From assembly GCA_033442325.1 (NCBI GenBank), contig JAWQFM010000020.1, positions 1,040,564-1,087,958 on the forward strand: a DNA stretch of 47,395 bases, given 5' to 3'. Shown one piece after another: positions 39,023 to 42,000 of the stretch (its first letter is position 1; every line of letters begins with the position of its first letter). The position numbers were made by a program, and so were the translations under genes. The notes beneath the pieces were generated by a model. It saw nothing but the letters and a program-made list of their open reading frames with translations. It did not search any database and was not told the DNA's origin. Source of the stretch: Salpingoeca rosetta. Its lineage: Eukaryota > Protista > Choanoflagellata.

Positions 39023-42000
39023 TCAAAGCAGGGTGCAGCACCCCTTGCTCTTTGCCTCCTCCTCCATCTGCAGCCGTTCGAGCGGGGCTGTTGGCCGCCG
39101 CTGCCGCTGCTCCATCTCCATGTTCAGCACTTCCGGGTTCTCTCCAAGCACCAGCGCCTCAAACGCAGCCTAAGTGCCGCACACACGTACGCGTATGCGA
39201 GTGGTTGTTTGGTCGGGTTCATTTTGGGTGAGTACGTACGCACGAGCGTTGGTCACGTATGGACACAAAATAGCCGCAGCAGCAGCGTGTGCACTTGAAC
39301 GCTGTGCCATTGTGGGAAAAGGGCGTGGGCGCACCAGCGCTTCTCCACACACGAGACAGACACACACGCACACAAAAAGAAAAAACCACACGCACACATA
39401 ACAAACAAACACAATATACAACGCGCACACGCGCGCGCGCACACACACACACACACACCTGCTTTGCCTCGACGGAGAGGTTGGTTGCTTCGAGGGCGTC
39501 AAACTTGCGGGACGAGAGGAATTCGCGGGGGCGGCTCAGCGTTTTCGGCTCAAACGCATGCTGCAAAGCACGAGGACGAGAGGGGGTGGAGGGTGAAGTG
39601 GTCATGTGGGTGAAAGGCGATCACGTGAGTGCGTTGTGGTGGTGGAGAGTGCAACTGGATTGCATGTGTTCCCATGAATACACACACCATCACCAGCTTC
39701 ACATGAAACGACATACGTGAGACGACTCGTCGACTCGTCGACACACACACACACACACACACACACACACACACACACGCCGCACCCCGTTTCCGTTCTC
39801 TGCCGCTGCGACCTCGACTGCAAATCCCTCCGGCTGCTCAACGTCCTTCAATTGTGGCGTCTTTTGAACAGCAGTAACGCAGGATCGGACGTGAACGCGA
39901 GCGTGTGGTTGCATGGGTTCGTTGCATGGGGTTACATGTGTGTGTGTGTGTGTGCGCGTGCGTGTGTGTGCATGTGCGTGAGCATGCAAGCACTTGTTGT
40001 CTCACCTTTGCAGCTGTTGCTGCGTTTGGTTTCGCTTCGTCTTCCTCGTTCTCTTCGTGCAGAACCTGAACCAGTGGAGGTAAGGTGAGGAATGGCACGG
40101 GACGCACCCAAACACACACACACACACAGACACACACACACACAGGCACACACACACACACACACCACTGCATGTGACCTCACCCTCTGTTCGAAAGAGC
40201 TTTGCCGCTCAAGTGCTTGCTTCTCCACATCCGACGCGTCAGTGTAGTCCTAACGACAAAGCAGCGATGGCAGATGGTGTTAGTGGCACAATGTGATGCA
40301 CAGCTGGCAACACATAACATGCACTTTCGCATCACGCACAAATGCGCACAAATGCGCACAACACAGAACAATACACACACACACACGCACAACGCACGAG
40401 CAGCCACTTGTTCACAGCAGGCGCCCACCCCTTTCTTGAAGTCGCTCTCGTTCTTCGCCATCTGCCGCAGTTGCGAAAACGCAATCCCAGCCTCCATCGA
40501 CTGTGGCCGCGACCTGTACACACACACACACACACACACACACACACACACACACACACACACACACACACACACATGCAGACACATGCCAAGGTGGTGA
40601 GGTACAGCATGGTGTTGCGCGCGAAAAGGACCATTGAGGCGCTGGCTGCATGAAAAATAGTTGTGTTGAACATGAACATCGCATGCACACGTGCGTTGCT
40701 GCTGTCGTTGAGCGCACCTGGTTCTCGATGGAGCTGGAGGAAATGCCGAAATGATCAGATATGACAGGCACAGGGCAGCAGTCAGTGAGCACGGCAGTGA
40801 GGTCTCGCGCCATCAGACGCACACACACACACACACGCACACGCACACGCACACGCACACACACGCACAGAAACAAGAACATATACAATGAGGTACACAC
40901 TCACCCACGCCCACATACACCCACGCCACATCGCTCGCAACGTGCACATACATGCTGGGGCGTCCTTGCTGCTGTCAAGATCATCGCTCACAGACGCAAG
41001 GGCGGAGCGCGCGAACCCGTACGCCTGATGGACAATGATAAGGAGGAAGGTCGAGGGAGGGGGGGTTGCATGAGTGGTTTTGTTGGTGCACGGGAAGGTG
41101 GAAGTTTGGAAAGTTGGAGGCTGGTGGGTTGGGAGTTGAGCGAAGCAGTGAATCAGTCGGTGAAATGGGAATGTGTTGGGAAAATGTGCACGAGTAGGAG
41201 AAAGGATGAAAAAGTATGACCACATGGGTCTGGGAAAGTGCAACAGCACGATGCAGATGGGTGAGCAGCAACGAGCGAATACACGCGGTCACAAGTGCTC
41301 ACGTCATCAGAAATGGCGGACGACGTCTTCCTGAGAGGCGGTCGATCTGGCATTGCATCATGTTGCACCATGTTGGGGAGGACATGGATGGTGATGACAG
41401 GCTCAACCATGCAGACCAGCGACATGAGCCACCACATCATGTGTGCACACCACCAACACCTCCCCTCCCCATCTCATTACCGCAGTCAACGCACTCGCTC
41501 TTCCCGCCCTCACATCCTCCCCTACCGGCCACCCCACCTGTGTTTGCTGCTGTCTGCTGCCCACTTCTGTCGTTGTCAGCAGTGTCTTCGCTGTCATCAG
41601 GCAGGAACGTCGCCCGGTTCCGCAAACTCTCCGTCGCTTGGTGGTGTCACACAAGGAGGAGGAGGAGGAGGAGGAGGAGGAGGAGGAGGAGGAGGAGGAG
41701 GAGGAGGAGGGGGAGAGTCGCGGTGGCGATGCAAGTGGTGGTGGTCGCGGGGAGCGAGTGTGGGGGTGAAGAGGGGTGAGGTGGAGTGAAATGCGCAGGC
41801 ACAACATATTCATGGCAGCATCAAGAGTCCAGCATCCTCACCAACAAAACACATGAGCAGCCACGCGCCTGCATGACTCACTTCGATGGAGCTCCAGCTG
41901 CCCTGTAATTCCGGCCTCGGTGCCAAACACGACGACAGTCGAGTTGGCAATCACAGACAGGCACAGGATGGGGCTCGCGCACTTGAACACACACACGGGC

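Follow-up and report, generated by a model that had tools for sequence, protein, structure and literature searches.

Introduction

Choanoflagellate NACHT-WD40 proteins are the nearest counterpart to NLR-type receptors in the closest living relatives of animals, and in Salpingoeca rosetta NACHT domains occur only with ANK, TPR, or WD40 repeats (Yuen et al. 2014, PMC3879445). Here we describe PTSG_07541, an S. rosetta gene on the minus strand of the analysed stretch G000:C20:1040564-1087958 (47,395 nucleotides, hereafter the window; the genome comprises 55.4 Mb in 68 contigs), and compare it with the NWD-type STAND proteins, such as animal NWD1/NWD2 and the S. rosetta paralogue at G000:C6:1418869-1422762 (L005). 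The winged-helix-like/helical region that follows NACHT in these proteins is homologous to that of PTSG_07541. The paralogues shared with it the signature ...HG..lV...l.yi..SR.GL...E.EDLLS.n..VL..., the motif YN.RK..E...HL, and C-terminal WD40 repeats. Unlike the NWD-type proteins, PTSG_07541 showed no DUF4062 and no NACHT/P-loop, and it had one propeller in place of a longer WD40 array. It also added a disordered tail of 250 residues ending in CCaaX, whereas the paralogue open reading frames (ORFs) that were read had no CaaX end.

In G-beta-gamma, a prenyl group on a C-terminal CaaX box anchors a seven-bladed WD40 propeller to the membrane. The CaaX box is carried by G-gamma (PMC10590752). 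That lipid sits on a separate subunit, whereas the predicted lipid of PTSG_07541 would be attached in cis, about 250 residues from the propeller, and only WD40 is common to the two. FBXL2 (CaaX CVIL) resembles PTSG_07541 as a non-GTPase repeat-domain adaptor; its geranylgeranylation is followed by palmitoylation of cysteines beside the CaaX box, which sets the membrane compartment (PMC9988375). FBXL2 differs in its leucine-rich repeat fold, its ancestry, its SCF ubiquitin ligase function, and its lack of a long disordered tail. OAS1 p46 (CTIL) is among the listed substrates of geranylgeranyltransferase I (GGTase-I) (PMC11152559). It is a cytosolic defence protein whose CaaL-type box, with Thr in position a1, directs it to membranes, but its fold is unrelated and the known immune role is that of OAS1.

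A literature search returned no paper mentioning PTSG_07541, and in a search on NWD1, NACHT, and prenylation none of the matches listed combined NWD1 with prenylation. The gene model is already known; the family, its NACHT-less state, and the conserved CCaaX end appear to be undescribed. PTSG_07541 is probably an offshoot of the NWD family without the nucleoside triphosphatase (NTPase), in which a predicted anchor of geranylgeranyl plus palmitate would tether a seven-bladed WD40 scaffold to a membrane. This conserved NWD branch is defined by two changes, the loss of the ATPase engine and the gain of a predicted two-lipid anchor on a long, motif-bearing tail, and the label "lipid-anchored NLR" does not apply to it. 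If the lipidation is true, the WD40 propeller would be tethered in cis, one chain doing what G-beta-gamma does with two. It would then also be, to our knowledge (no dedicated literature search was made), the first known prenylated STAND-derived protein.

Orthologues and the C-terminal CaaX box

PTSG_07541 (EGD76422.1 / XP_004991337.1) is deposited as a "hypothetical protein" of 830 residues (P0001). It was retrieved by a protein search with the stop-free ORF containing the first exon (A), and the later whole-protein analyses used P0001. Four choanoflagellate orthologues of 877-939 residues were found beside it. An exhaustive HMMER search with P0001 gave three proteins of similar length among many WD40 proteins, and a word search with the tail only gave the fourth. 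The Microstomoeca roanoka protein (912 residues) showed 54% identity and the Barroeca monosierra protein (939 residues) 47-49% identity; the orthologues of Hartaetosiga balthica and Salpingoeca infusionum had 877 and 894 residues, respectively. The entries of M. roanoka, H. balthica, and S. infusionum came from EukProt, were flagged 'type:complete', and each lay on a single Trinity transcript, the H. balthica ORF spanning nucleotides 101 to 2734 of comp7854_c0_seq1.

All five proteins ended in GCC-a-a-[L/I/V]. The end was CCTLL in S. rosetta, CCVLL in M. roanoka, and CCSLV in S. infusionum (KRNGCCSLV), and CCMLI and CCVVL occurred in the others. G825, C826, and C827 of P0001 were invariant in 5/5 species at overall identities of 30-54%, confirming the C-terminal CaaL-type box with an adjacent Cys that the original prediction had proposed. 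Position a2 was always L or V, X was L, L, I, L, and V, and the preceding 30-40 residues were not alignable. In the window, the G-C-C-T-L-L codons occupied 39026..39043 on the minus strand, with the CaaX Cys (C827) at 39035-39037 and the adjacent candidate palmitoylation Cys (C826) at 39038-39040. The minus strand at the gene end reads ATGGAGGAGGAGGCAAAGAGCAAGGGGTGCTGCACCCTGCTTTGA, with the stop codon at 39025-39023. Neither the paralogue ORFs read nor the other 147 proteins from the searches, nearly all of them top-scoring WD40/STAND proteins, had a CaaX-like end.

In a GGTase-I-type box the Cys is the fourth residue from the C-terminus, a2 is aliphatic, and X is L, I, or M; CTLL, CVLL, CMLI, and CVVL showed this pattern. 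GGTase-I acts on CaaL/I/M, and both CVLL and CTIL, the latter with Thr at a1, showed full geranylgeranylation by human GGTase-I in a yeast reporter (PMC11152559). Farnesyltransferase (FTase) can also modify many CaaL boxes in the reporter assay, CVLL among them (PMC11152559). In the S. rosetta genome, three loci encode prenyltransferase beta subunits, one gene is Rce1-like, ICMT is present, and DHHC enzymes account for at least eight loci. For a dual anchor of the H-Ras, RhoB, and FBXL2 type, the second Cys beside the CaaX Cys was present in every species as an invariant CC pair, and DHHC loci were found in the genome. The CaaX signal is genuine and kept by selection, and the genome has the pathway for the predicted modification.

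Rab-type double geranylgeranylation of the CCxxx ending was rejected, as the enzyme responsible acts on a Rab fold brought to it by REP. As a separate observation, the genes for the Rce1-like CaaX protease and for a prenyltransferase beta subunit lay head to head less than 1 kb apart (G000:C1:2258148-2260135), forming a divergent pair for two steps of the CaaX pathway.

Predicted structure

AlphaFold was run with the five-sequence alignment on the M. roanoka orthologue, which was preferred to the S. rosetta protein because the model of the latter is incomplete internally. The model showed a seven-bladed propeller with 28 strands at residues ~333-616, with predicted local distance difference test (pLDDT) values of 80-96. 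The tail had pLDDT below 50, with short low-confidence helices at 709-730, 738-755, and 863-874. These helices coincided with conserved motifs, including SIEADIALSQ... and LERQSSFEQ. The N-terminal region had no match among PDB sequences, whether one sequence or a profile was used as the query.

Proposed mechanism and competing readings

The five proteins form a choanoflagellate-conserved family, probably descended from DUF4062-NACHT-WD40 STAND proteins through loss of the entire N-terminal half with its NACHT NTPase. The parts retained are a winged-helix-like segment with a helical linker (~280 residues, or ~325 with the gap in the S. rosetta model filled) and one seven-bladed propeller, followed by a mostly disordered tail of ~250 residues with two or three conserved short motifs and the invariant C-terminal GCC-a-a-[L/I/V]. 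A CaaX prenyltransferase, most likely GGTase-I, would attach geranylgeranyl to the CaaX Cys, the fourth residue from the end. Rce1 would next remove -TLL, and ICMT would methylate the new C-terminus. A DHHC enzyme may then palmitoylate the neighbouring Cys, giving a stable yet regulatable two-lipid anchor. The propeller would thereby serve as a binding platform near the membrane, without a nucleotide switch of its own, in a protein that would have retained the regulatory and sensor half of its NWD ancestor. S. rosetta can be transfected and genome-edited, making the prediction directly testable.

Several points weigh against this reading. Lipidation and membrane targeting of PTSG_07541 are predictions from sequence. 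The S. infusionum box, CSLV, has V at X and falls outside the CaaL/I/M consensus, CTLL itself is not among the sequences assayed in PMC11152559, and all three beta loci of the genome are candidates for GGTase-I. The scaffold role of the propeller is a proposal. The N-terminal 327 residues had a mean pLDDT of only 54.5 from a shallow alignment, and the first ~100 of them gave weak matches (Z 4-6, below the trust level of the tool) to winged-helix domains that follow AAA+/STAND ATPases, namely those of PAB2304, ORC/Cdc6, and a wheat NLR, which are suggestive only, though consistent with the hhalign result given below. Two runs of N touch the gene, one of 100 N in the coding region, an assembly gap, and one of 3.6 kb within the first intron. 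The presence of WD40 and CaaX on one mRNA, across the junction of the last WD40 exon (Q) and the first tail exon (T1), and the 5' end of the gene are read from the gene annotation and the orthologues.

The chemistry of the C-terminus might differ from that proposed. The GCCaaX end may not be prenylated, serving palmitoylation only, metal/disulfide chemistry, or partner binding, or it may be farnesylated instead; we regard this as unlikely, though a real contender. It would agree with the predicted nature of prenylation here, with V at X in S. infusionum, with the few basic residues upstream, and with the FTase activity on many CaaL sequences including CVLL. However, in 5/5 proteins the Cys was exactly the fourth residue from the end, a2 was aliphatic, and X was L, I, or V, although the 40 residues before the box varied freely. 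This is the pattern required by a CaaX prenyltransferase. The full processing pathway is also encoded in the genome.

A second possibility, which we hold to be improbable, is a split STAND system, in which the lipid-anchored, NTPase-less winged-helix/WD40 module would pair with the NACHT-bearing NWD paralogues, act as their decoy, or inhibit them. One chain would then detect the ligand and another would undergo nucleotide-driven oligomerisation, as in sensor/helper NLR pairs, and the RxRxxS site and KQAAFE helix of the tail would be regulatory handles.

Relation to NWD-type STAND proteins

Within the preferred reading of a tethered, NTPase-less scaffold, the N-terminal region carries the link to the STAND proteins. 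A profile of the N-terminal ~280 residues from the five species matched residues 265-522 of a NACHT-WD40 paralogue ORF (hhalign 98.6%, E 5.5e-16, 216 columns), and the NACHT domain of that ORF ended near residue 208. By homology, the PTSG_07541 family therefore corresponds to the region that follows NACHT in NWD-type STAND proteins, and its members start downstream of the NTPase. Exon B was 46% identical to five paralogues, just downstream of their NACHT matches in long ORFs that open with DUF4062-like sequence. Pfam analysis of P0001 gave only WD40/beta-propeller families at residues 272-558 (WD40 with 107 bits, plus TEP1-type propeller families); Pfam NACHT had no match on P0001, and a genome-wide PF05729 scan had none at the PTSG_07541 locus. 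The start points of all four orthologues agreed to within 5-50 residues, and three of these ORFs were flagged complete. Of the parts that make up a STAND protein, the post-NTPase winged-helix plus helical module and the C-terminal WD40 repeats were found, and the NACHT P-loop with Walker A/B was not.

The original prediction had read the gene as a STAND/NLR-like NWD protein with a NACHT domain upstream, whose absence it had named in advance as a refutation. The kinship with NWD-type NACHT-WD40 proteins held, but neither NACHT nor another NTPase domain was found, and the public protein and the four orthologues begin after the NACHT-equivalent position. As it has no NACHT, PTSG_07541 cannot alone be a nucleotide-switched STAND or NLR-like sensor, and a role in non-self or bacterial sensing is pure speculation.

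Exons A and B joined in phase (...CCIAASRDG|LTLDELEDL...), and the joined sequence ran without interruption both in a paralogue (LETRHGKETVRAALGYLSASRGGLSDNEMEDLL) and in every orthologue. The 3.6-kb N run between the two exons is therefore intronic and holds no coding sequence of PTSG_07541. This bears on the idea that the gene encodes a complete NACHT-WD40 STAND sensor whose NACHT exons lie in the N run or further upstream and were missed by the annotation, which we consider very improbable. The N run starts exactly at the window end, but the contiguity of A and B makes it part of an intron; beyond it, only ~320 bp separate the ATG from a tRNA-Arg gene and a divergent gene upstream. In M. 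roanoka the transcript extends 947 nucleotides ahead of the ORF, yet three independent transcriptome ORFs, flagged complete, share the same start. Although paralogues of the same genome have DUF4062-NACHT, the genome Pfam scan for NACHT had no match at the locus. The N-terminal ORFs of the paralogues, compared with the window and 20 kb upstream by tblastn, gave nothing at default settings and swamping low-complexity noise at permissive ones, and no weight is placed on this comparison.

At least five close DUF4062-NACHT-WD40 paralogues were seen in the genome (L005-L009; G000 C6:1416500, C4:2022500, C7:1893500, C4:1697500, and C4:338500), with near-identical N-terminal ORFs (ICMREIKRCQQESSGISYVLILGNKYGF). 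This near-identity points to a recent expansion of the NWD gene family in this genome.

Gene model and disordered tail

Exon borders were placed by eye, and GT-AG sites and reading phase were then checked by script. Exon A, with the start codon (MQTAKWEN...ASRD; MQTAKWENTIKALSGKYGPKLVEFVFCCIAASRD), lay outside the window at L003:3952-3850 and was separated from exon B by the N run. Exon B (47204..47355, minus strand, as are all exons below) encoded the winged-helix-like segment, P0001 residues 36-85, and A+B aligned unbroken to the paralogue and all orthologues. A helical region links the winged helix to the WD40 propeller and was encoded by exons C (46924-46780), D (46581-46519), E (46126-46083), F (45876-45760), G (45581-45502), H (45288-45227), and I (44986-44867). 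The seven-bladed propeller was encoded by exons J (44651-44508), K (44313-44226), L (43511-43414), M (43228-43113), N (42986-42873), O (42673-42612), P (42384-42278), and Q (42024-41882). Family scans of the single exon peptides gave WD40 on these propeller exons. The intron between K and L (43512-44225) measured ~714 bp, compared with 118-290 bp for the tail introns. Part of this intron was a long (GAT)n(GAG)n microsatellite, and ~350 bp were unique and might be an inserted element.

Every exon peptide was found in order in P0001, split codons aside, with the exception of exon E. This exon had good splice sites and was present in 4/4 orthologues and in paralogues, and it is skipped by PTSG_07541. 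Exons D and E mismatched in phase, and the orthologues had ~30 extra residues at this place. Therefore, the 100-N assembly gap at 46327..46426 hides coding sequence, ~30 residues between exons D and E. The public model is thus corrected, as it lacks exon E and ~30 further residues owing to the assembly gap, and the true length of PTSG_07541 is probably ~875 residues.

The last WD40 exon, Q, ended at 41882 in phase 1, as the original prediction had placed it. From there, tail exons joined in phase with canonical GT-AG sites to KSKGCCTLL; this chain and its end agreed with the prediction, but the exons numbered ten (T1-T10) and not about eleven. T1 (41636-41526, alternative donor 41538, AAG acceptor) followed directly after the propeller and started the disordered tail. 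T2 (41346-41303), T3 (41024-40952), and T4 (40733-40718, a 16-nucleotide micro-exon) encoded the early tail. T5 (40513-40429) carried a conserved motif including the invariant Ser, P0001 S658. T6 (40249-40184), T7 (40065-40006), and T8 (39860-39786) formed an acidic low-complexity linker, in which ERQSSFEQ of T6 was partly conserved. T9 (39560-39459) held the first half of the best-conserved tail motif, and the last exon, T10 (39169-39023), ended in KSKGCCTLL and the stop codon, its peptide being unique in the genome.

The union of WD40 and CaaX exons in one gene, also claimed beforehand, was borne out by the public model, which joins them, and by the orthologues. S. rosetta gene models were built by EVM and later improved from RNA-seq data by means of PASA and Inchworm, with transcript support for 98% of genes (Fairclough et al. 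2013, PMC4054682), and the 16-nucleotide micro-exon in the public model fits, in our judgement, such transcript-guided annotation. In the five-way alignment the peptide over the Q/T1 junction (LELHR|...) was unbroken and conserved, and the T2, T3, T5, T6, T9, and T10 peptides were conserved in the orthologues from four other species. A separate tail gene is excluded for practical purposes by this conservation on orthologue transcripts. That the tail exons form a separate gene, or that the intron after Q is retained, so that the WD40 protein ends 14 codons on, where the read-through frame stops, and is never joined to the CaaX box, is hardly credible: the weak AAG acceptor of T1, the tiny T4, the early stop, and a word search with P0001:520-680 that matched no transcript-derived fragments spanning the junction speak for it, but the RNA-seq-refined model joins the exons, the junction peptide is continuous and conserved in orthologue transcripts, and T1-T3 hold no Met to start a separate protein.

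The tail of ~250 residues was mostly disordered, with 72-80% disorder-promoting residues compared with ~60% in the body, and its length was maintained at 243-295 residues across species. A long flexible leash, as first proposed, describes its disorder but not its conserved linear motifs, RxRxxS-ME and KQAAFExLVxGExxDVxNxE, so it is not a plain leash. The KQAAFE motif stood 47-74 residues from the end. The sole invariant mid-tail residue was S658, in a basophilic-kinase-like RxRxxS context; that it is a regulated phosphosite is a reasonable guess and no more. Pfam searches with eight tail exon peptides (T2 and T4 were left out, having fewer than 20 residues) gave no family and no paralemmin-like match. 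An FFAT motif for RKFDALEA in T9 was rejected, as position 2 is Lys and not aromatic.

Genomic setting

Downstream of PTSG_07541, the neighbouring gene starts at 38242. Upstream, beyond the window, the neighbours are a tRNA-Arg(CCG) gene and a divergent C2-EGF gene, the spacer between these and the PTSG_07541 ATG being only ~320 bp. The tRNA-Arg(CCG) gene lies on the plus strand at L003:4277-4351 (G000:C20:1092076-1092150), within the short spacer common to PTSG_07541 and the divergent C2-EGF gene. The N run (3.6 kb, L003:160-3765) begins at window end +1 and has a (GT)n repeat on its far flank. At the other end of the gene, a long ATC/ACC-type trinucleotide microsatellite occupied window positions 38900-38990, ~35 bp past the stop codon, in the presumed 3' untranslated region.

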